A stretch of 64,000 bases of DNA from Takakia lepidozioides (Eukaryota > Plantae > Bryophyta): NCBI GenBank assembly GCA_030704615.1, contig CM060732.1:31992001-32056000 (forward strand), given 5' to 3'. Each line of letters begins with the position of its first letter. Within the stretch, counting starts at the first letter, position 1. The position numbers and the translations under genes are program-made. A model generated the notes under the pieces. That model was not told the DNA's origin, ran no database searches, and saw only the letters and a list, made by a program, of their open reading frames with translations. Below are positions 3,333-43,751 of the stretch, piece after piece.

Positions 3333-3488
3333 GATAGTGAGCCAGTGGTTGCATTTGTCCAGTATAGATTTTTAGTGGAGCATGACTTGCCAGCTCTGTA
3401 TGTTTATGAGCTGCAGCTGGAGCAATGCGTTCAAGGAAAGGGGCTTGGCAAATTCCTGATGCAGTTCCTTGAATTGATTGCACGAAAG
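3333..3488 (+). pseudogene. NAA40: Isolated exon of N-alpha-acetyltransferase 40 (NatD)-like GNAT
   Basis: AG|DSEPVVAFVQYRFLVEHDLPALYVYELQLEQCVQGKGLGKFLMQFLELIARK|GT: the GNAT acetyl-CoA motif QGKGLG in NAA40-type context (YRF...LYVYELQLE). Confidence 0.85.
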
Positions 3489-4793
3489 GTGTATCTCTTT
3501 CCTTATTTTGTCCTGGGAGCATAAGTGTAAACTAGATATGTTAATTTCAGCTCATGCTCTGTTATAGGTCAGTCATTCTCTTTGCCAACATCGAGATGTG
3601 ATAAGTGGTCCCTACAATCAAGAATGGCTTTGGTGTTGATTGTGTGTTGATTTAGTCATACAAATTCATCTACCAGTCTATCCTGAATGAATCATTTAGT
3701 TGGAGGACTCGTAGATAATCAAGATGATTTCTATGGTGTGATGACATCACAAGAACCATGGGGGGGGGACTGTGCAGCAGCAGACCATTCAAAGGCTGCT
3801 ACCTGCAACCATAAGTTGCTGCTATGAGTGAGAAGCATTCAAGTTGTCCGTCTGCCAAGGCTGCAATGAGTAGCTTGCGAAGACCTTTTCACATATTTCT
3901 CACCAGGTGCTGGGACAGGTGCTACAGCAAACAACGTTGTATATGTTGTTGGCCCTGATATCAGAACATGGTGCCATCAATAGTAATGCGAAAAGCTGAA
4001 TATAAGAGCTCATCTGGGGAGGACCTCATCTGGTACTTCGGGCCGGATGACATTTGTACAGAATGTAGAAAAGAATGTAGAAATGACATGGTTCTGTTTG
4101 CACATTTGAAGTGAAGTTTGGGACCTTGAACCAAGAAAGAGGGACTGGTCAAAATCAATTCTGACCTGCATTGCTCAAGTTTGCAGTTGGGATATCGGAT
4201 GGGAAGTGGAACTTTTGTAGGTCAAAATTGCTGAAGCCACACCTTGAGCAATGTCATTCGAGGCCGTGGTTGACAGAGATCTGCCTTTCATGGACACCTG
4301 TTCTGTATGATAGCAAGTGCACTCATCCCTGTAAAATGTACCACCATTGGTATCTCCATGGAAAGGAGGGATCAGCTGAGCTCAGGTGCTGGATAACAAC
4401 TTGTTTCCCCACTTGGCTGGCCCTTCATGAACTTATGTTAAAATTAACCGGGAATGGATTGGGAAAACTTCTTATGCTGGTTTTTTATTGATTCATGCAA
4501 ACCAGAAATTATATGCTAACCCCTGATACAAGAAAAAGGAGACAAATAAGGTGCCAAAGTCTTGAACCCCTCACACCAAAGTAGCCAAAGATAGAACCAA
4601 AATCACTTGGCTCCTTAACAAAGTGTTGTAGATGCATATGGCCTTATCTCTGAATTAAAGTTAAATCAAATAAATCGATACTTGAATCAGATAACAGAAG
4701 CCACACTTTATGAAGTGTTGTGGCAGGTCATACACCAAATCCAGACGTGCGATCAGCATCTGAACTTCAGGCAATTCCTAATACCCTCACAGA

Positions 4794-5059
4794 CTTTTGT
4801 AAAATTGGAGCACTCCATTAGTCAGACAATACCAAGGAATTAACAAATGGGATACTGGCTTTTGTAAAATTGGGGCACTCCATTAGTCAGACAATACCAA
4901 GGAATTAACAAACGGGATACTGGCTTTTGTAAAATTGGGGCACTCCATTAGTCAGACAATACCAAGGAATTAACAAACGGGATACTGGCTTTTGTAAAAT
5001 TGGAGCACTCCATTAGTCAGACAATACCAAGGAATTAATAAACATGATACTAGCTTTTT
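4794..5059. repeat. Tandem repeat, 4 x 65 bp, immediately upstream of the transposase ATG
   Basis: Unit cttttgtaaaattggRgcactccattagtcagacaataccaaggaattaacaaaYgggatactgg starts at 4794, 4859, 4924 and 4989. Confidence 0.95.
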
Positions 5060-5084
5060 ACCTTCAGGCATTCAGCTACTGAGA

Positions 5085-8000
5085 ATGGCATTGTCAGAGA
5101 TCACAAATTTGCCGTTGAGCAAGCAGCCTCCTTATAACGTGCGGGTTGCAATTGATGGAAAGTATGCGATTTTGAGAGGTCGATTACTAGAGGAGCAGAC
5201 ACCGAAGTCAAACTTCTCTAAAAAATGGAGAGCAGGAGGTACGAACATAGATCTCTGGCTTGATTCATCCCTTTATCCTAGTGACCCAACTACAGGAGTA
5301 CGTCCCAACATGAGTTCCATAAGAGACTTGCTTCAATTCGTGGGAGATGGAGAGGAGGGTTTTCTGGGTTATGTGAAACACCTTCAAAGTGTTTGCTCAA
5401 CCAATGTAGAGACTGCAAATTGGCGAATTCTATTCGAAGCTGCACAACAGCAAAACGCAGTAGAGATTCAAAAATTGAGGGATCAAATTCAAGTAGAAAG
5501 TTCCTCCCGCATGGAGAGTGATTCATTGAATGCTCAAATCACCACTCTGGAAAGCAACATGAGCAACATGAGAGCTTCATATGAGAGTCGGCTGCATAGT
5601 CTGCGGTTACAAGTTCAAAATAAAGAAGAAGAAGTTCGTGTAATGGATGGTGTTTGTGAAGCTCAATTGGAAGCTGTACGATCAATTCATGCGATGGAGT
5701 TAGATCAGATTGAGAGTTCCCACAAGTCCGAATTGAGATCTGTTGCAGCTCACGAGGTCTAGGGCTTGGAACAAAAACTAAGTAAGGTTCACAACACCCC
5801 CTATGGACCTAGAAGCCAAATATGCCAGAGGAACAATCTTGCACCAAACGGTGGACAAGCCAAGGCGCTTAGAAGATTGGCACGGAGTATCATTATGCCA
5901 GCTACTACACAAAAAGTGCAACAAGAGAACGCTGCATCAAACAGCAAGAAGAGGCTTTGTGGCGATAGAAGTACCCAAGAAGAATGTGGAAAAGTCTTCG
6001 CTCAAATTCTATCAAGGACTGAGGTAGATTCGATGTTGCATGTGCCTACTTTTACTCACGTAGGTGCAAAAATGGCAAATCAATATCTCAATGAAATCGG
6101 CAAACAAGTTGGGCCCAGTGAGATTTTGGAGACCTGTGACACAAATGGGATCACCCAAGCATGTTACAGTGCAATTTACAAGAAATTTAAAGGTGGTGTA
6201 AAAGTTGCCTCCAAAGGGATGAGAGTAGGATGTCTGCCCAATCCGCATCGAGTGTCAAAATTGCGCAAGGAATTGAATTCCAAGCTTCAGGATTTCGTAG
6301 GTGAATACTATCACTTGAACAACAGCCTTGAAGTTCCTAAAAAGGTCAAGCACGGTGAAAAAAATGATGCTACTCGAGTGACACTATCCGAGCACAATTC
6401 TTTTTTCGCGGATGTGGAGCAGGTGCAACATACCATGGTCGAACTGTATGAGATCACACTTGCCGGTAAGTTTTCTACATCGTGCACCTATAAATTCTGT
6501 GTTTTTAATCTTTAATTTCATATATTCTTAGTACTGATTGCTTCATTTTGATTTTACAGAATTGAAGGGGAGCCCTCTACAGTTTGTCTTGAAGCTTGAT
6601 GAGGCAGAGATCATTCATGCCCAAAAGCTAGAAAGAGTGAGTATTACCCTCATGAACCGTGCATTAGACCCATCCATCACTCCGGATAGTGAAAAGTTTT
6701 TCAGTGTGCAAAGCGAGAGAGAGATTTGCCTATAGCTTGTTTTCAAGTGGCAAAGGAGAACACAGAGGTTCTGAACTGGGTGTTCCAACAAACCAAACTC
6801 CCTTCGCTAATTCAAGTCCAAGAAAATGGGCAACTTCTTCACGTCCCAGGTTTTGGTGATTACAAGGTAGAGTGGCACATGGCAGCCGACATGAAGACAA
6901 TAAAAGCCATGTTCGGTTTGAAGGGAGGTGCAAATAGTTTGCATTCTTGCATTTATTGCATGCAAGAGAGAGTCAAGTTTGTAGAGGGATCCATGAAGGA
7001 CGCCGCTGCTGCTATTAGTAAGCGTTCCCATACATGGAATGGAGGCTTATTTGCCCAAAACATTACTGCTAAACCTGTAAGTGGGAGTCAGGGAAAAGAT
7101 CGTTGGAAACCAGTGTTGCCCATCCCCATTGAAAGAGTGCATATTTGCACTTTACACGCCATGAATAGGATCATTGAGAAAATGGTCCACCTCCATTTCA
7201 TGTTCGTCTGGACCATTCGCGATAAGAAATTACAAGAGTTAGCTATTGCTGACATGGAAAAAGTGTTGTCCAGCACTGGTGCACACAGTGGTTTGGTTAA
7301 GATCATGAAAGATGATCAACTGTCTGGCAAATTGAGTAATATCCCCAACAAACCTTTGTTCAGCGGCCCACATGCTGCCAAACTCTTTAAACCGAGTACT
7401 TTAGAGGGAGGCTCCGACAAGTTGTACATTGATGTGGTAAAGTTCGAGCACAACCACACTGAAGATGGGGCATGTAGGAGAAATCGATTAGCATGTTGGG
7501 TTGCATTTGATAAATTGCGACCCTATCTTTCTGGCCTTACACTCACCGGTGGACAAAAAGCTGAATATAAGAAATGTGTGGAGGAATTCAGACGCGCTTT
7601 CATCAAGAGTTGGGGGGAGGGTCCAGTTACACACTATATTGTGAGTATCTAAAACATCCCTTGATATTGATTGGAATGCTTATAGTAAAATTTTGCATTT
7701 CAATCATAGCACTTATAGATGACAATGCTAATTGTTCATGTTGATTGGAATGCTTGTAGTAAAATAGCATAGATGACAATGCTAATTGTTTAAGTTGATA
7801 ATTTGCAGCATGTATTGGTCAAGCACACCCCGTGGTTTGTTGAAAGGTATGGAAGCCTATCTGTCTGGTCATGTCAAGGAATGGAAAACTCGCATCACGC
7901 AGCAAAAACGGCATATCAGCGTCATACTCAACATGCTGGAACAAAATGCAAGAAAAGTCCTTTGGTACAGACCTATGAACACTGGTTCAGGTTCATTCAA

Positions 8001-8240
8001 CATAGATTCAGAAACAAAAGCCTTCAATCGAATGTTGCCATTGGTAGCCTTAGAGGTGAGGAGGCAATTCAGGCCCGACGTATAGCATCCTTAAACTCAA
8101 GCGCAGCAGCGCACAGCGCTTTGTGGAGATTAAGATGCACTCGGGTTGGCAGTAGATGGGTACCAAAGTCTGAAGAGCTGATTGTAGAAGAGCCGATTGA
8201 GGAGTCACCGGAGGAGCCAATTGCGGACTCCCAGGTATGA
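5085..8240 (+). pseudogene. RAG1/Transib-like DDE transposase gene, spliced, with 1 premature stop and 1 frameshift
   Basis: Exons 5085-6465, 6560-7640 and 7809-8240, GT-AG introns in matching phase (possible short extra exon 8351-8377). In-frame TAG at 5760-5762 and a 1-nt loss near 6726. Motifs in RAG1 order: coiled-coil N-terminus; ITQACYSAIYK..LPNPHRV; FVLKLDE (first D); AADMKTIKAMFGLKGGANSLHSCIYC (second D plus CxxC); ICTLHAM; VTHYIHVLVKHTPWFVERYGSLSVWSCQGMENSH (HxxxxH plus catalytic E). Confidence 0.85.
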
Positions 8241-10212
8241 GGTTCAAAGTTTAACCACTTCATGCGTTGTAAACAACATTCGGTACTTTCCTATGTTTTG
8301 TTTTGCTTGTTTTGATGTACGTGTTGGTGTATGTGTTGATGTTCTCACAGGTGCCCGCATCATTCGTTGCGAGCTGACAAAACTGCGATGGAACCAAGCC
8401 TAGGTCCTGCAGGTGAGGGATGCATGGGTCTTACCTGGCCTAGGTCTTACATGTAAACACAAGCTACCTACAGACCTAACTATACCTGCAACATTAGTAC
8501 CTCATCAACAAATTCTGGCTTTTGGTCTGTGTCAAAGCAGTCAAGTGCCTTCTTGGCAGCTTTAGCCTCAGCTCGAGCTTCTTCAGCAATAGCCTGCAGG
8601 CAGCTCCCTCATGTTGTCATGTTGTCATGTCAGGCAGCTCCCTCACTGAGGACAACACCAAGACCACCAAGAGTGAGTATCTCCAGCTTCTGTGGATCCA
8701 CCAAGCCAAGCCTCCAGAAGTGCATGCGTTTGGTTACATCACCATCATACTTTGGTGGATTGTAGCCAGAATGCCTAGTGCAACTAGGCTCCAAGACAAT
8801 ACAAAACAAAGAAATAGCTCAACTAGTTGTCTGTCATCATCTCCATCAGACCACAACCAATGTAGGAATACCTGGGAACAATGGTGTACCTCAAATCAAG
8901 TCATACAAAGTAGAAACTGTAAGTTCACTCATCACCCGTTCCTTCACAGTCTTGTCCACCCATGTACAACAAGTTCTTCCTCCTTCTTCATTCAGCATCC
9001 CTCCTTTCCTCCATCCTATCCTGTAATATACTTTGCCATCCAACCTTACACTACAAAGAAGACTAGTTGCTTTCACTTCTCAGCAGAATGACTACTCTTG
9101 ATGAACCTGGTATGACACCTTCCAGTAATATCAGGCACCTTGAACGAATTCACAACTAGGGTTTGTCAACTAGGGCAAAAGATCGATAAGCACGTCTCCC
9201 TAACCCGCTCTCCTACGAAGCACCGCTCTCCCGAGCATCACCGCTGTGCACTGAACACTGGAATGTTTTGCTGTTACCTGGTTTAGCTTCTTTGAAATGG
9301 GAACACAATACCAGCTGTGCTTGGGGTTGAGCCTAACTAGTCTGAACCTGAAGCTGCAGCCGTTGCCACTTCTTCTCCTTGTACAGTGCTCTTTGTACAG
9401 TACATATAAACATACCCAGACCAAGACCAAATGCCCAAAGATATCGTTGCCCAAAGAATTCTCCAAGTCCTCGTTTGTTGAGTCCTTCATGTCCTCCATG
9501 CTCGCATGTTCCATCTCCTCATCGCTCGAAAGCTTCATCTTGCCTGGACTTGCTGCTCAGGGGGCGGGCGGTCGTCGCTGCCAGTGGCGGATGCAGATAC
9601 TGGTTTTACGCACACACTCTCCCTATCTAAGTATTTAGTGTGAGTAATGTAACAGATAGTGAAAAGCAACTCACCTGTCAACTAACCTTCACATTTACAA
9701 ACCAGACTCATACAAAATGGAAGCATGGATAGAGAAGCAGACCCCATATCAATCTGCGCACCAAACATCCATCCATTCAATCTCATCTAAATCTAAACTT
9801 GAGTATAAGTATAAAGAAAGTTTCCATATTTTCAACGGATCATCAGAGCATTCTTGGTTATCATGGCAATCTTAAACACATCGCCAAACAAAAGGTCCTC
9901 GGTTCGAATCTTTGAACAATTCACCTCACATAATAAAGGTAATATTTTTTGTTCAACTAATTTTTTGTAAATTGCTCAACTAGTTGTCAATTTTTTTGTA
10001 ATTGCTCAACTAGTTGTCTGTCACCATCTCAATCAGACCATAACCAATGTAAAAAAGGAGGGAACAAAGGGGAATTTTTCATATAACAAAGGTAAAACTA
10101 CCAACCTGAAACTTTAAAATGTCACCTAAAATGTCATCTAATGTTGCAAATGTCATCTAATCTTGTGGCCCACGGACCTAATGCCCACAGCCCTAGAGTC
10201 TAAGGCTACACT

Positions 10213-11605
10213 TTAGGATGCATTGGCCACAAGTCGTAGTCGCTTCGGAGGCAACACATCGACAGCTGTGTACTTCTTCTCATTTCTAATGTTTACCTAT
10301 CAACAAGAAACATGTAATTTTGTTAGAAGCTGTCATAACATTTGAAGCTGTGAATGGATTACCATGATTGCTGATAACTAATTCCACATACATTTTTGGA
10401 CTTGATCCCATCTTCATCCACTATCGTGAAGTCCTCAGGAATGTCTGAACCAAAAGCAATCGTAATCTCATGTCGAATGCTTGACATTGTCCAATGTCGC
10501 CCAACCTCAATTTCTTGCTGTCTTGCATCATATTCACAACATAAACTGACCATCTCCACAAACTGAACCTGATCCATCGTTTCCCATTTGTTTTCGGATA
10601 TCATGCGTTGCCGATTGAATTGAAATGTGGCGTATAAAACAGATTGGCCAATGTGATATCTGAATCTCAGTGTTGAACGATCGACAACACATCTAATGAC
10701 ATCGGCTCCAATGGTGATTTTTGTATCACATCCAGTATCCATTAGTGATTCCAACAGCTTCTCACATGGTTCTTTGAAAGTGAACATGGTATTGCTCTTA
10801 GAGATATTGTTGGCCACTGAAAATAGATCTACCATTACTCCGATTGGCATAAACCATTGTAAGTGGGTTGATTTGCTTCCTGTTCTGGGTTTCATAGAGG
10901 ATAAGAAATCAGACCGCAACTTCAGTCTGAAAGACTCACTGGTCGCCATGTCCGGTAATGGCCAAGCTGGATCACTAAAACCAGGAAGAGGGATCGGCTG
11001 CACTGTTCCAAACTCAGATCTACCATTGTGTGGGGTGTAAAATGCATTGTAGAAGTACACATGATTTTGCAGAAGCTCCTTGTGCGTTCAATTTCCACGG
11101 CAAGCCTCACCTACTTCGGCGTGCACCACATATAGAACATCCATTATACTCTTCGGATCAATCCAATCTTCAAAAGTGGAAAGGTATAGGTCTGCATTGA
11201 AAACCCCACCCTCATCATATTGTTGTTCCACTGTGCACAATACAAGGTGAACTTCATAGCAAATAATGTAAACTTATGAGGAAAGTTAGACATCTTACAA
11301 TTGCAAGCGCCTCTGCTGAAAGCTACATCTGGAGGCAAATCGAGTTGCCGTTGCATGTAAGTATGTTGAACACAGATTATGGATACCACTATGGATCCAC
11401 CTTCGAAACGAAACTTCAGCACCTTCGCCTTGTACGCCCCCTCTGTTGTAGAAGTTCCGCCATGCTTCGATGAATCTTTAGCATGATCGCCTCTTTTACC
11501 CGGCATCAATGCTACCCAAGAGTTACTCTCCACCATCATCCAATTATCATCCTCGTCTTTTGAATTGAACAATATCACAGATCCTACTTCACTTCGTGGC
11601 CGCAT
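10213..11605 (-). pseudogene. Spliced gene with BAH-like domain, an unknown middle domain and a C-terminal ubiquitin-like segment
   Basis: Exons 11605-11299, 11191-10392 and 10296-10213 join in frame via GT-AG introns, with one internal TGA at 11088-11090. BAH-like pattern: MVESNSWVALMP..AYKAKVLKFRF..ICVQHTYMQRQL..NYLYLSTFEDWIDPKSIMDVLYV..VYFYNAFY. C-terminus EIEVGRHWTMSSIRHEITIAFGSDIPEDFTIV...VLPPKRLRL is beta-grasp-like. The true start may lie further upstream. Confidence 0.65.
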
Positions 11606-13778
11606 TGTGTTTCGGATTTGCAATTCCCTCTGTATCCCACCAAGGAATCAACTTAGAATCTGTTTATACCTTTGTGAGGAGGGATCCCTTTCCCTATATA
11701 GGCATCCCTTTCCTCTATATAGCTCTTCACAGATGGCATTTATCTCCTGTCTATGAGCTCCCAGCCATAAAACCCCAACGGGGCCAAGGCTTTAGGCTCA
11801 ACCTCAAGATTTTGAAAGTTGATGAATAGAGGTGCAGGGACTCTGTGAAGTGGAGGTCCTCTCTGATGAGAATACCCTGGACATTATATCAGAAAATGGA
11901 TATTGCATATTGGAAATTGGATATTGGATTTTGATATATGAAAAGATGGATATTGGATATTGATTAGATATTTGATATTTGAGAGGTAGGAAGGGAGACA
12001 GACTTCATTTGAAACATATTCCAGACTGTTCCATTTTCACCCCGAAACATGGCTGCCAGTCATCACCAAGCACTGTCCAGTTTATCCATCCACAGGGGCT
12101 TGAAATTCAGTTCAATGTCTCTTCTGAAATCAAAAGAAAAAGCATTGCCAGAACAGCATGCATTGTTTAAGGCACTTGTCCAAAAACACATCAGTCAGTT
12201 CTTCCTGCCTGGAGGCACTTGCCAGTACAGCTACCCGCCATGATCAATGACATCACTAGCATATTGGAAGTCTTCGATGTCATTCAGATTATACGAGCCA
12301 GTCTCTTGACCAGCCTCAAGAGACAATCTCTTTTGAAGAACGGATTTTTCAAATGTGACTGAGTATAAGTTACCCCCAAATGAATCGTGGGGTCTCTGAA
12401 GTTGCATGGATTACCATTGCTACCATGGCTACCAGTTGGGATAGTACCCTGGTGGATTAGTGGGAATTGACTTTCACAATGTTCACATGTGTGAATAATT
12501 GTACATTGCTGTTGGCATTTCATTCTTGGTCAAGAAGATATACACCTGCTGCAATAGCGAAGATATTGGAGACATGTAACAACCTATTGAGGATTTTGGT
12601 TTTTTTGTCACCCTTCAAACTTTTGAGGGCAATCAGTTTACATCACAAATTGAATGGCTAGGTGCCCTGAAAATTGAGTAGTCTATTACCCGCCCCATGC
12701 TGCTTTACAAGGTCTTATACTAAACTGAAATGGACAGGGAAAGCCAGGCCTTGGACGCTCCAGTGTCATCGCCAACCCCAGTATGTATACGGTCCTATCA
12801 TTACTTCCTTGCCACATACAAAGCATGCAAAGTACTCACCCAAGCAGGTGCCGACTCCTTGGCAGCGGGCAGAGTCAAGTGCTTGGGGTCGACACCTCCT
12901 AGCAATGGTCTGGTTTTGTCACTGTAGCTTGCTAGCACTGACCTCACCTGTGTCAAGCCACAACTAACCACACTTCAGTATGGCAACATGTAAACAAATG
13001 GGAAGAGTTTGAGGAGTGAGGAAAGGGCAGAATGAACAGACCTATGAACATTGGTGTTTAGCTCATACACAGAACCACCAAGGGGAGGCAAAAACGAGGC
13101 ATTAGGAGCCCAGGTGGGAACAAACATTTTTCTAATTATTTGTGTAAGTTATGAGTTTGCCTCCATGTCTTGGTTCGAATGATGTCTATAGAACTTAAAC
13201 GCTCAAGACTCTCAGACTCCAACACGTAGAGAGTGACTCCCACATTGGCTATGGCGCACACCGCCACAGTAACTCGTTTGCAAGTGTGAGATGGATCTGC
13301 AGCTGCACTAAAGCAACAAAACGCATACACTTGTTTAAGCTGATTCCCCTCTCTTCCTCTATACAATACCGAGAGGCACAGGTACACACAACATTACTCA
13401 ATATCAGCCATGTTGATGGTTTGGCGATTCCCAAATGCACCATGCTGCTTGAGAATAAACTGGGAAATGTGGAGCAATGCAAGTTCAGTCACGGGCCCAA
13501 CTTGGCCACCGGTTCTATCCCTGTTTGCAGAAACATTGTAATGAAAGGACAACTGGCAATTTCTGCTGCCAAATCACTTAGCAAAGATTCAATAAATAGC
13601 CATGTAGCAGGATGCCCATCCTTAAAGCAGCCATCCCCTTATCTGCTTTCCTCACATGAGAACATCCACCAATCATTAGACCTCCCATACTGAGACCGCG
13701 TCGGACGATTACAGGGAGGGTGTGACGACCAGATTGTAGCAACTTGATAATAAAAGAGAAAAAAACGAGAGGTCGTGC

Positions 13779-15193: not shown

Positions 15194-17286
15194 ATGAAGC
15201 AGCACCTCGATGGCGACGAAGACATGCTGCTCCACAACGACACTGATGTCAGCGAAATGCATCTCTCTGACGAACAATTCTTCGCCAACCCTCAAGCATA
15301 CCAAACACGCTCAGCTCACAAACAAACGGCCTCCCATATGTAGCACACATTAGGTCACCCCCTCAACACACCAAGTCCACAACAGCCAACGCAACAATTA
15401 GCACTGTGTACCCTAGCGAAGATGCACAACAGCAGCCCACACCACAAGCGTTCTCCGAGCAATTACAACAGCGATGCGGGGAGTTCCCACTCGGATCCAA
15501 AAAAATCCAGGGGACATTCCCCCCCTGGCCCAGTGCAAATCATGGAGATCTCAAGCTACCAGGTTGACCCCCGACTCTGGATGGGCTACTACGCCTTGGA
15601 TAAACATGCAAGTGATACCAAGCTCCCCTACATCAAGGAGACCCGCTCCACGTTAGCTCTCCAAGCCCTGGGCCTCTCGAACAATGAAATCTACGAGATG
15701 AGGCACAGTCTCAAAGCCTATCCTCACGTCCCTCAATTATTCTATCCCGCGGTACGTCCAGATGGGAGAGAAGGGCAACTCTACCCGCTCACGCAACTAC
15801 CAAAATCGACCCAGTCTCAAGTCTGCCTGCAACGCCATATCACATCATCATACGATTTGACTCCAACACTGACATGCCCAAGGAACAGGCTCTGTTCAGG
15901 GCTCGCAAGAGATTTGAAGTTATGAATATTCCTCTCGGCAAAGTCCTATTAGCACCGATCACAGCATATACAACGCACACAAGCAAACTCTGGGCAGATG
16001 TTTTCAAAGTTGAGCTCCTACACCCCGCCACCGACGGTGTGGCCATCTTGAAAGGCGACCATGCCTTTGTAATGGAGATGGCCTCTGGCTTACAGGTCCA
16101 AGGGAAAATAAAGAAGGCATTTGATCTGCCTGCCTCCCCCGAATATCTCTCTCTTTACTTGACCAGCGAATCCTTACTGGGAGCTCTCAGCTACAACCTC
16201 ACCAGGCAGTTCATCCTGGAGTCATATTCGCATGAAGACGAATTCGAAATCCTTCACGTGCACAAACCAGGCCCAGAGTCAAAATTCTGCTTTGTCTACT
16301 TGGCCTCAGAGGACACCAAGCAACGTATGTTGATGCATGGAATCCGCTACGAGCATACACTCCTCAGGCCACAGCTACGGGTCAAAAAGACAAGTATGAC
16401 TGGACTCAAAGCTACCCCGCAAGAATTGGTTGCAGAACGTGATGCCCTTACACTGGTGGTCAAGAATCTCAACCCCCTTCACTCTCAGACTACTACCATG
16501 AACGCCTTCCACTCCCTCTTTGGCAAAGACAACATTGCACAACTGCACTACAACTCGGTGGCTCCCACGGAAAAAACAAGGCATACTGGTATGGTCCTAA
16601 TCACCTGTAAGAACCCCAATATCTACACTCAGTGGTGTCACAAGCCTGACATTATGGTCATTGATCGACGGATCAAATTCGAGCCACATGCACACAGTCT
16701 CAACGGCTCGTCCCCTCCACCCAAAGAGATACTTGACCGAATGCGGGTGGCGAACATTAATCAGGCGCTAGCTGACACTGTTAATTCCATCAGCATTCAA
16801 CCCGACGCTGGTCCTAGTCGGAACCACGACCAGATGATGTCAGAAATTGACAAACGGCTTGCCGACCATGCTATTTCCATACGCAAGGACATCCGTGGAG
16901 ATCTTGCAGCCATGGAAGGCAGAGTTGCTTCCACCATTCAAGCACAACAGGAAGTCCACCATACGTATCTGGTCTCGCTACAAGAGTCAATCACCCAGAA
17001 TCTAGGAGACAATCTGGCCAGCTTTTACAGACATGCTAACCTGGTTATGAACAAATTACCACCCCCCTCCAGTATGGCTACTCCTTCTGCAGGAACGGGA
17101 GAGGCCAAGGATGGGACGGAGGCTCTAACATGTGGGTACCGGCCAGCAGCTGCGGTCGAACTGCACCATACACTCCCTCCGCGTTTCAACATTGCAGATT
17201 CCCCCTTTGCCCAAACTGGAGCTGGCTCTACGCACCAGCTACGGTTGTTCCACAGATTCGTCGCCCATTGCTTGTTCAGATCTTAG
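15194..17286 (+). mobile_element. Degenerate ORF1/gag-like gene of a probable non-LTR retrotransposon (tandem RRM-like domains plus coiled coil), no ORF2
   Basis: Intronless frame from ATG 15194 (stop ~15340, frameshift ~15870) into the 470-aa ORF. RRM-like segments FCFVYLASEDTKQRMLMHGIRY and LTLVVKNL...HTGMVLITCKN...IKFEPH, then a heptad-rich region. Preceded by a C/pyrimidine-rich leader at ~14750-15130. Confidence 0.45.
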
Positions 17287-41786: not shown

Positions 41787-43751
41787 ACTTGTAGAACCAG
41801 CTTCCAGCTACACTAGGCCTGCATCCGCTATAATAAGTTACTTGACCGTAGTGGTAGTATAGTCATGTCATGGTTCAAATTCGATGGTCTTGATTCAGAC
41901 CAACTTAGCCGACTAGGTAGTCACTTAAAATCCTTGAACCTCTTCAGATCACAATTCATGTGTACATAATTTTATGGTCTAGAAGGAACCGATCTCATGG
42001 TTCATTTAAAAGAGGACTGAGCTTCATCAAGAGCAATACCATGTAAGTAAGTCACTTCCGCTTGGAAGACATTCAATCACATACTCAATCCCAAGCTCAT
42101 TATGAGACATTCTGCACACTTTCCACAAGTGAATTTTTTTCAGTTAGTTTTTCAGAGGGGAAGTAAGCCTCAAAATTTTATTGATCAGGGGAAAAAACAA
42201 AACCCCAAGGGATCATAAAGCAAACACACCAATAGTGGATGCGGGAGGAACCCAGTAACCAATACGGAGAGAAAAACCATCAAGCAGGATGAAACCAAAT
42301 GTGAGATCATCACAGGAGTGCTTTTCAGTACCAAGAGTTCAGAAGTTCATAAAAACGTCAATGTCAGGTGATGAGGTGAATGCCATTTTCTAGATATACA
42401 ACTTTGGATTGCGTTGGATTTTGAAGATGAATCACCGGAGAGCATGCACATTCCAAAGATAAATACCCATGTTTGTGTTCATATTTCTATGGACTACCTA
42501 TTAGCCGCTTGTTGAGACGTTGCCAGATGTCTTGAAGATATGTATCTTACATTGCATACTGATAATATACCGCAAAAGAAGGCTCCATTAAAGTTGAGAG
42601 GGAGTGAGTCCCTCAGTGCATTCTGTTGCAAGTTGTTTCCCTCTAGAGATCCCTTCCCTTCTTTTTGGGGGAAAGGTCAAGCAGTGAGCTGCCATGGTGC
42701 AATCTACCCATAATCGGGTCTTGATAGTTGTTGCTGTCAAAAAAGTGTTGAGGGAAGTCTTGACGAAGTGATGCCAGTCATTGTCAATTGACAATTTTAG
42801 ACAAACTTCCAACTGCCTAGCTAAACTGGACACTTATTGCTTGGTTTTGTGTACTTTGCAGGTATCCTGAGGAATGGCAAACTTCATAGGCAAGTTATTG
42901 GACCTAATCTGAGAGACTATATTTCAGACTGAATCTGGAAATAAAGATGAAGTTCCCAATCTGCTGTTTGTGAGTTGCCCAGCAATTAGACCCCAACAGG
43001 GCCAGGGCTTTAGGCTCAGCCTCAAGATTTCGACATTGGTGAACAGAGGTACAGGAACAATGTTCTTGTTGTTCCTGAAAAGGATCACTCTCCGGGTGAG
43101 ATTACCCTGTACAACCTGATCTCAGACAACCTATCAGGAAATGGAAATAGTCTGCAGGCTGGCAGTAAATCGGGTAATTCTTCCTCTCTACATCTATTTA
43201 CGGTTCACCACCGCCCTATATCTGGTAGTAGACATGCAATTCAATCGAACCCACCATCTACATGTAGAATGTCCTTTGTAAGACTTTGTTTGCAGTATAG
43301 TCTTGTGGCCATAGACCCCACCCCAGTTTGGACCGTATCAGAGGGAATAGACACTACCTTGGAAGGGATCACTCCAGAAGTTAGAATCACCTTGATATAA
43401 ACAATTAGATTAGTCTGGGTTTCCACATTTCCTCTACAAAGCCCTTCACACAAGCATCAAATCTGCTGTGTGTGAGCAGCCCAAAAGTTAGATCTCAACA
43501 GGGCCAGTGCTTCAGGCGCTGCCTCGAGCTTTTGAAAGGGAGCCCAAGAAAACAAATGCTTGCTGCGTACCTGGCATAATTGATTCAAATGTACAACTGT
43601 AGACGAGTTTTGATTTTCTTCCTTTTCCAGTGCACACCCCCCCACCCCCCTTGCCTCGTTCCCCACATGCCCTCACCCTCACCAACTCCACCTCTTGTGG
43701 AAGTGGAGAGGTTAACCAAAAATATTGTAAACTACGAAGATGTTTCCATCC

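Follow-up and report, generated by a model that had tools for sequence, protein, structure and literature searches.

A decayed moss transposon that probably paired a RAG1-fold transposase with a convergent gene for a predicted BAH and ubiquitin-like protein

V(D)J recombination is traced to a transposon with convergent RAG1-like and RAG2-like genes, and why a transposase of RAG1 type requires a second subunit that reads chromatin is a matter of continuing debate. A stretch of 64,000 nucleotides (nt) from the moss Takakia lepidozioides (NCBI GenBank assembly GCA_030704615.1, contig CM060732.1, positions 31,992,001 to 32,056,000 of the forward strand), referred to below as the window, raises the question of whether plants have a comparable arrangement. 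A preliminary reading made from the letters alone (the sequence-only reading) had proposed that the window holds a RAG-like transposase gene and, converging on it tail-to-tail, a gene for a BAH-like chromatin reader, here called the partner. We found that the two genes form one transposon that recurs in related loci. The window copy is probably a decayed autonomous cut-and-paste DNA transposon with two convergent genes, encoding a RAG1-fold transposase and a BAH/ubiquitin-like accessory protein that would couple it to chromatin. The two genes are made up as follows (positions in the window).

5085-8240, + strand: RAG1-like transposase gene, 3 exons, with 1 in-frame stop and a 1-nt deletion
5085-5762, 5766-6515, 6538-6735, 6726-7652 and 7803-8240, + strand: open pieces from the list of open reading frames (ORFs), all belonging to this one gene
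5085..6465, + strand: transposase exon 1, encoding the N-terminal region, which includes a coiled-coil stretch; in-frame stop at 5760-5762
6466..6559, + strand: transposase intron 1, GT-AG, 94 nt
6560..7640, + strand: transposase exon 2, with catalytic Asp 1 (LKLDEAE), Asp 2 (ADMKTIK), the zinc CxxC motif (CIYC) and an HICTLH motif
7641..7808, + strand: transposase intron 2, GTGAGT...CAG, 168 nt
7809..8240, + strand: transposase exon 3, with the Hx4H zinc motif, the catalytic Glu (HVLVKHTPWFVERYGSLSVWSCQGME), the C-terminal tail and the stop codon
11605-10213, - strand: partner gene, 3 exons, with 1 in-frame TGA
11299..11605, - strand: partner exon 1, ATG at 11605, first half of the BAH domain
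11192..11298, - strand: partner intron 1, GTAAGA...CAG, 107 nt
10392..11191, - strand: partner exon 2, encoding the other half of the BAH domain, the middle domain and the greater part of the ubiquitin-like domain
10297..10391, - strand: partner intron 2, GTATGT...TAG, 95 nt
10213..10296, - strand: partner exon 3, encoding the final strand(s) of the ubiquitin-like domain (VNIRNEKKYTAVDVLPPKRLRLV) up to the stop codon, located by tblastn with the C-termini of the homologues P0067, P0074 and P0160

Exon 1 of the transposase gene gives collinear tblastn matches in L001, L003, L010, L014, L016 and L017, from residue 1 onward, and its donor site is GTAAGT at 6466; after intron 1 the frame reopens as ELKGSPLQFVLKLDEAE, in agreement with the family consensus, and exon 3 is conserved among the copies at other loci. 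Joined, the three exons would encode about 964 residues. They carry two lesions, the in-frame stop at 5760-5762 and, relative to the family consensus, a 1-nt deletion within a conserved Trp codon at 6727-6728. In the partner gene, splicing of intron 1 restores the homologue-like sequence ...ACN|YLYLSTFEDW, and the TGA at 11090-11088 occupies a column in which the homologues have Arg. The short exon 3 was probably overlooked by the sequence-only reading; with it, the joined exons would encode about 396 residues. Intron 1 of the partner is present in the window, L005, L006 and L008 and absent in L004, L007, L013 and L016, this variation among copies pointing to intron gain or loss within the family. 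The genes lie tail-to-tail, separated by 1,972 nt from one stop codon to the other, which bears out the original description of a second spliced gene converging about 2 kb away with one internal stop. The window copy cannot be active, since its transposase has a stop and a frameshift, its partner has a stop, and it lacks recognisable terminal repeats. For both genes, searches were made with single exons or with natural intact homologues.

The pairing of transposase and partner is not due to chance, since 9 other independent loci or elements show it as well. Tail-to-tail pairs were found in 10 in total, including the window (L003, L004, L005, L006, L007/L010, L013, L014, L016 and L017, with L007 and L010 counted as one element). 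The linkage elsewhere of partner homologues to RAG1-like ORFs, which had been put forward as a check, was thereby found in the convergent orientation. One survey took as its starting point transposase homologues on long ENA-assembly contigs (L001, L002, L003, L014, L015, L016 and L017); here, the partner is tail-to-tail with the transposase in L003, L014, L016 and L017, across spacers of 0.2–5.7 kb, and no partner was found within the fetched flanks of L002 and L015, the transposases of which are both 3'-truncated. The other survey started from the partner on JGI metagenome contigs and one Logan contig (L004 to L009 and L013). In five elements (L004, L005, L006, L007/L010 and L013), a convergent transposase tail lies 0.1–0.4 kb past the partner stop, while the L008 contig ends before the informative region and in L009 the partner is followed by 2.6 kb of other sequence. 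Neighbouring genes on the related contigs are plant-like.

Two copies show what moved. L003 and L014, which come from separate contigs and have unrelated flanks, are 93% identical exactly over the span bounded by, and including, their terminal repeats: homology runs from L003 6539 (L014 7138) to L003 12941 (L014 16567), with both genes inside, and the sole break in it is a 3.1-kb insertion within the L014 spacer. The ends of both copies are a 32-nt inverted repeat, CATTAGAGCCATATT(C/G)GGGTCTCTA(C/G)ATGCCT, which did not occur anywhere else in the loci or in the window. Since these shared inverted ends enclose both genes, the unit that moved contains both. In L016, which belongs to a different family, 34-nt inverted ends (97% identity) with the same CATTAGAG start also enclose both genes, over 11.1 kb. 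The two genes have moreover co-diverged over deep splits of the family. Pairwise protein distances of transposase and partner were correlated across 7 elements (Mantel r 0.95, p 0.0018, all 5,040 permutations), and remained so without the near-duplicate L014 (r 0.85, p 0.008). Together these data support the conclusion that both genes form one transposon, transposed as a whole.

Is the transposase of RAG1 type? The D-D-E triad and the CxxC and Hx4H ligands (LKLD, ADMK, CIYC, HVLVKH and GME) are conserved in the family and are all still present in the window copy. Their spacing (D76-104-D180-20-CxxC and Hx4H-20-E) is RAG1-like; in mouse RAG1 it is D600-108-D708-19-C727xxC730 and H937x4H942-20-E962. 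For the fold, AlphaFold was run on a natural homologue, P0265 (459 residues, 54% identical to window 6726-7652), giving a predicted local distance difference test score (pLDDT) of 67, with 75–95 in the core. When this model was compared with solved structures by Foldseek, ranks 1 to 46 were all RAG1, amphioxus BbRAGL or the Transib transposase of Helicoverpa zea (HzTransib), with a best E value of 3.8e-5, and unrelated structures appeared only after rank 46, at E>0.2. VIA-align, which is independent of Foldseek, matched the model to RAG1 (4wwx, Z 9.9) over 294 residues, covering RAG1 579-933, to BbRAGL (Z 9.1) and to HzTransib (Z 7.7 over 240 residues), while every other row was a helical hairpin of 50 residues.

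Two further lines agree with RAG1/Transib. The language-model neighbours of 6726-7652 are mostly clusters with RAG1 ZnC2, ZnH2 and RNase H families, and RAG1 families occur in 7 of the 9 distinct family-set rows shown. With exon 3 alone as phmmer query against PDB chains, three of the four best matches were RAG1, at E~1, and the alignment falls exactly on the Hx4H ligands and catalytic Glu of RAG1 (13 of 28 residues identical); at that E value, the RAG1 match is not significant by itself. A family-profile search for distant relatives returned no Pfam label among the 120 listed of 213 matches. The predicted fold and the catalytic and zinc motifs support assignment of the transposase to the RAG1/Transib type, and it is best described as a RAG1/Transib-fold enzyme of a divergent lineage.

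The partner belongs to a sizeable family: a HMMER scan of 1.84 billion representatives gave 186 related clusters, including uninterrupted ORFs of 373–418 residues. The nearest ESM Atlas clusters carry PF01426, none of them matching the partner over its full length, and sequence and profile searches of PDB chains gave no significant BAH match. Structure prediction was made on the intact natural homologue P0070 (418 residues, 42% identical to window exon 2), using an alignment of 40 sequences, and reached a pLDDT of 88.8 and a predicted template modelling score of 0.80. The top 50 Foldseek matches are BAH domains throughout (E ~2e-5), among them those of TNRC18, BAHCC1, ASH1L, ORC1, Sir3, EBS, SHL, AIPP3 and DNMT1/MET1. 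By VIA-align, residues 6-189 match BAH domains with Z 13.5–9.5, the best being Arabidopsis ORC1b (root-mean-square deviation 2.6 A over 130 residues), and residues 334-418 match ubiquitin/UBX-like beta-grasp domains with Z 11.0–8.4, the best being the UBX domain of PUX5 bound to CDC48A (9v9o, Z 11.0), with many ubiquitin-like domains at 8.4–9.6. Residues 190-333 form a middle domain between the two. The model supports a BAH domain at the N-terminus, followed by the middle domain and, at the C-terminus, a ubiquitin/UBX-like domain. The BAH domain that was to be sought in a fold prediction is predicted, at Z up to 13.5, and the sequence-only description of the partner as BAH-like plus ubiquitin-like, without kelch, holds at the level of fold on this homologue: the structure matches of P0070 comprise BAH and ubiquitin-like folds with no kelch propeller, and no kelch family occurs among the called genes of the related loci. 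The same matches agree with its being non-homologous to RAG2. Two finer features were noted. The aromatic-cage positions of the BAH domain appear to be Trp/His/Phe, His and Tyr/Phe, not Tyr-Trp-Tyr, by a hand alignment to the EBS-type motif that is weak, and the partner alignment has a conserved (V/I)NxRxE loop, which cannot be equated with the UBX motif.

A distant homologue of the partner was also seen in another context. In the P0183 cluster (29 members, on contigs of about 2.2 kb), it is fused to an N-terminal zinc-ribbon region, the first exon of which sits elsewhere on a contig without the BAH part (L012 464-1003). The P0183 protein is nearly unchanged across many runs, and may represent a host gene, domesticated or chimeric, that arose from the partner.

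How might the two proteins have worked together? We infer that the transposase would cut and paste the element, that the BAH domain of the partner would bind nucleosomes or a histone mark, and that its ubiquitin-like end would make contact either with the transposase or with some factor of the host. The partner would in this way link the transposase to chromatin, by tethering or licensing, as the PHD finger of RAG2 does for RAG1, while being unrelated to RAG2. It may be a functional analogue of RAG2 in target selection or anti-silencing, as the sequence-only reading had suggested.

Several observations weigh against a RAG-like two-gene transposon. i) No Pfam family matched the window pieces of either gene, the 45 transposase relatives or the 40 members of the partner family, PF01426 included for the latter, and profiles built from the transposase relatives did not reach the RAG1 chains among the PDB sequences. 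ii) The folds of both proteins come from models of homologues, not from the broken genes of the window. iii) The ends of the elements in L003, L014 and L016 begin with CATTAGAG and have no CACNGTG heptamer, and the flanks of these 3 bounded elements share 2–3 bases (AGA/AGG, TAG/TAT and AAA/AAA) with no 5-bp duplication, a target-duplication reading that is provisional with only 3 elements of moderate age. iv) Around the window copy, no ends emerged from a 12-mer search in which a perfect 5-bp duplication was demanded, heptamer-anchored pairs occurred only at chance level, none of them usable, and the flanks, when aligned locally, gave scores no higher than those of shuffled sequences. v) In L001, the partner is on the same strand as the transposase, 5.8 kb downstream; since L001 falls together with L016 for either gene, it represents a rearranged copy rather than a chance neighbourhood. 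vi) Two distant RAG1-like lineages (L018 and L019) have no BAH partner alongside. The part of the label 'RAG-like transposon' that stands is the fold with its catalytic and zinc motifs, whereas the sequence searches, the CATTAGAG ends and the missing 5-bp duplication do not fit it.

The genes of L018 (3017-5390) and L019 (1142-3904) are 35% identical to that of the window and are nearly intronless ORFs of 660–790 residues. Their contigs are low in GC (34–36%), and one of the genes lies 1.4 kb from a phosphoglycerate kinase gene.

Known systems resemble these elements in different respects. Transib elements are single-gene elements of 3–4 kb with 5-bp duplications and CACAATG...nonamer ends (PMC1131882, Kapitonov and Jurka 2005), the heptamer of Transib and of the recombination signal sequence (RSS) being CACAATG/CACAGTG (PMC1131882). 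The Helicoverpa zea Transib transposase shares the fold, the DDE triad and the zinc motifs with the present one; the present elements, however, are 6.4–11 kb long, have two genes and other ends, and encode a transposase of about 964 residues versus about 700. Proteins counted as 'Transib-like' in plants by Tao et al. 2022 came from angiosperm assemblies, not mosses. With RAGL/ProtoRAG and vertebrate RAG1-RAG2, the elements share the RAG1-fold DDE transposase and its split CxxC/Hx4H zinc site, and as in RAGL/ProtoRAG the second convergent gene lies within the same terminal inverted repeats. In both RAG1-RAG2/RAGL and the present elements, the second protein bears a domain of chromatin-reader type, which in RAG2 is the PHD finger (PMC7204232, PMC4411706). 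The partner differs from RAG2 in consisting of BAH, middle and ubiquitin-like domains in place of a kelch propeller with PHD, with no homology between the two; the ends differ from those of RAGL in being CATTAGAG, not RSS-like CACAGTG, with no 5-bp duplication and a plant host; and the similarity of the transposase to RAG1 in sequence is below detection by profile searches. On account of the CATTAGAG ends, the lack of a 5-bp duplication and the lack of a sequence link, the elements are not canonical Transib or RAGL elements. As regards known BAH readers (ORC1, EBS/SHL, AIPP3, BAHCC1, TNRC18 and DNMT1/MET1), the predicted fold of partner residues 6-189 matches theirs, whereas the partner has no Pfam BAH match, is joined to a C-terminal ubiquitin-like domain and is encoded by a transposon.

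A serious alternative to the partner being a cofactor, doubtful as it is in our estimation, is that it is a counter-defence protein and that the transposase works alone. By anti-silencing, it would compete with or redirect the BAH silencing readers of the host, or it would recruit Cdc48/p97 through its UBX-like end to strip silencing or transposition complexes. Anti-silencing genes are known from plant Mutator-type elements (VANC). Plant readers related to silencing (EBS, SHL, AIPP3, ASI1, ZMET2 and MET1) are among the closest BAH structures, and the best beta-grasp match, the CDC48A-bound UBX domain mentioned above, is followed by the UBX domains of Shp1, UBXD2 and p37. However, UBX domains are ahead of other ubiquitin-like folds by only 1–2 Z units, the UBX loop motif is not recognisable with any confidence, and a cofactor would account equally well for the strict retention of the partner beside the transposase through deep splits.

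The ends raise a different alternative, namely that the element lies within or beside the CACTA/Mirage/Chapaev (CMC) group and that the partner is the counterpart of TnpA, RAG1 being matched for want of a solved CMC structure; to our knowledge, no structure of a CMC transposase exists for comparison. The CATTAGAG ends, the 2–3 bases shared by the flanks and the two-gene layout do recall CACTA-type elements. With CATTA... at their start, the ends differ from CACTA in a single base, a target duplication of 2–3 bp and not 5 is possible, two genes are the layout typical of CACTA, and one near language-model cluster (rank 9) carries PF02992 (Transposase_21). As in CACTA (En/Spm) and PIF/Harbinger elements, a transposase and a separately encoded accessory protein are found in one element. 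Nevertheless, we consider a CMC origin unlikely. PF02992 was not matched by any family member even at E=1, and neither Transposase_21 nor the Myb-like/TnpA partners of CACTA and PIF/Harbinger were matched in sequence. The language-model families were RAG1 in 7 of 9 rows, the Hx4H-20-E and D-20-CxxC spacings are RAG1-like, with 13 of 28 residues identical in the ZnH2-Glu motif, and the structural match takes in the RNase H, ZnC2 and ZnH2 regions, with 290 residues aligned. The transposase fold is that of RAG1 and the accessory protein BAH/ubiquitin-like, by prediction.

It is still less probable that the partner is a mere passenger, a gene captured from the host that has no role in the element. 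Plant DNA transposons often capture fragments of host genes, and BAH and ubiquitin-like domains are common in host proteins, but the partner is full-length, has its own introns and start, and is an intact ORF in P0070 and L013. It has been kept, co-diverging, across element families with transposases only 42–64% identical, and no host-type BAH protein is detectably similar to it in sequence. Finally, accidental convergence of two unrelated genes, to which the lack of terminal repeats around the window copy and a 32-nt inverted repeat (2457-2488/8614-8644) bracketing the transposase alone might have pointed, is refuted by the 9 further tail-to-tail pairs, by the L003/L014 repeat-to-repeat homology taking in both genes, and by the co-divergence of the two.

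The reading of a transposon with a RAG1-fold transposase and a chromatin-coupling partner can be extended, if only tentatively, to possible convergence. RAG1-fold transposases may have been paired independently at least twice with a convergent chromatin reader (the kelch-PHD protein RAG2 in animals and a BAH-ubiquitin-like protein in plants), with the BAH partner binding the transposase and a histone mark gating cleavage or integration. The plant lineage, having the same enzyme fold and convergent layout with an unrelated reader, would be a natural replicate of the RAG arrangement, and the question of the chromatin-reading subunit becomes testable in a tractable system. If readers were indeed recruited independently, coupling to chromatin would be a general requirement of this enzyme family and not an accident of vertebrate immunity. 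In a literature search, no paper combined Transib with the BAH domain, or the bromo-adjacent homology domain with a transposon-encoded partner, and the papers mentioning both Transib and moss describe no such elements. A Pfam-based survey of plant transposons (PMC12973397) would miss both genes; since both are invisible to Pfam-based annotation, the family is probably unannotated in bryophyte genomes.

The surroundings of the two genes in the window contain the following further features.

4794..5058, no strand: tandem repeats, a 65-bp unit in 4 copies, immediately preceding the transposase ATG (self-BLAST 93–96%)
8241..10212, no strand: tail-to-tail spacer, exceeding the 0.1–0.75 kb of most relatives

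The 65-bp units are possibly subterminal or promoter repeats of the element. Further upstream, an ORF on the + strand (3345-3524) has a GNAT acetyltransferase-like motif, QGKGLGKFLM, and is probably an exon of a host gene; this host-like motif confines the left end of the element to about 4200-5085. In the spacer, a 72-nt direct repeat (8813-8884/10000-10070, 85% identity) may flank a later insertion, and by analogy with L014 the window spacer probably holds later insertions.

The 32-nt inverted repeat named above (97% identity), the right arm of which lies in the spacer, might have marked the ends of an element containing the transposase alone, but was rejected as a boundary of the unit, since related elements enclose both genes within their ends. 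Its right arm contains an internal duplication of CAGGCAGCTCCCTC. Beyond the partner, a repeat of about 100–150 nt (82% identity) occurs at 11742-11841, just upstream of the partner start, and at 42959-43058, on the same strand and 31 kb apart; no inverted repeat was found around the distal copy. An uninterrupted ORF of 470 residues on the + strand (15874-17286), with no Pfam match, lies in a GC-richer stretch.

Two observations concern the related loci. L005 has a 75-nt inverted repeat (1621-1695/3374-3448, 96% identity), with one arm in the partner intron and the other beside the last transposase intron, which looks like two insertions of a small repeat. ORFs with DUF7869 lie near two elements (L002 11426-11872 and L017 1303-2043), and may belong to another transposon family.

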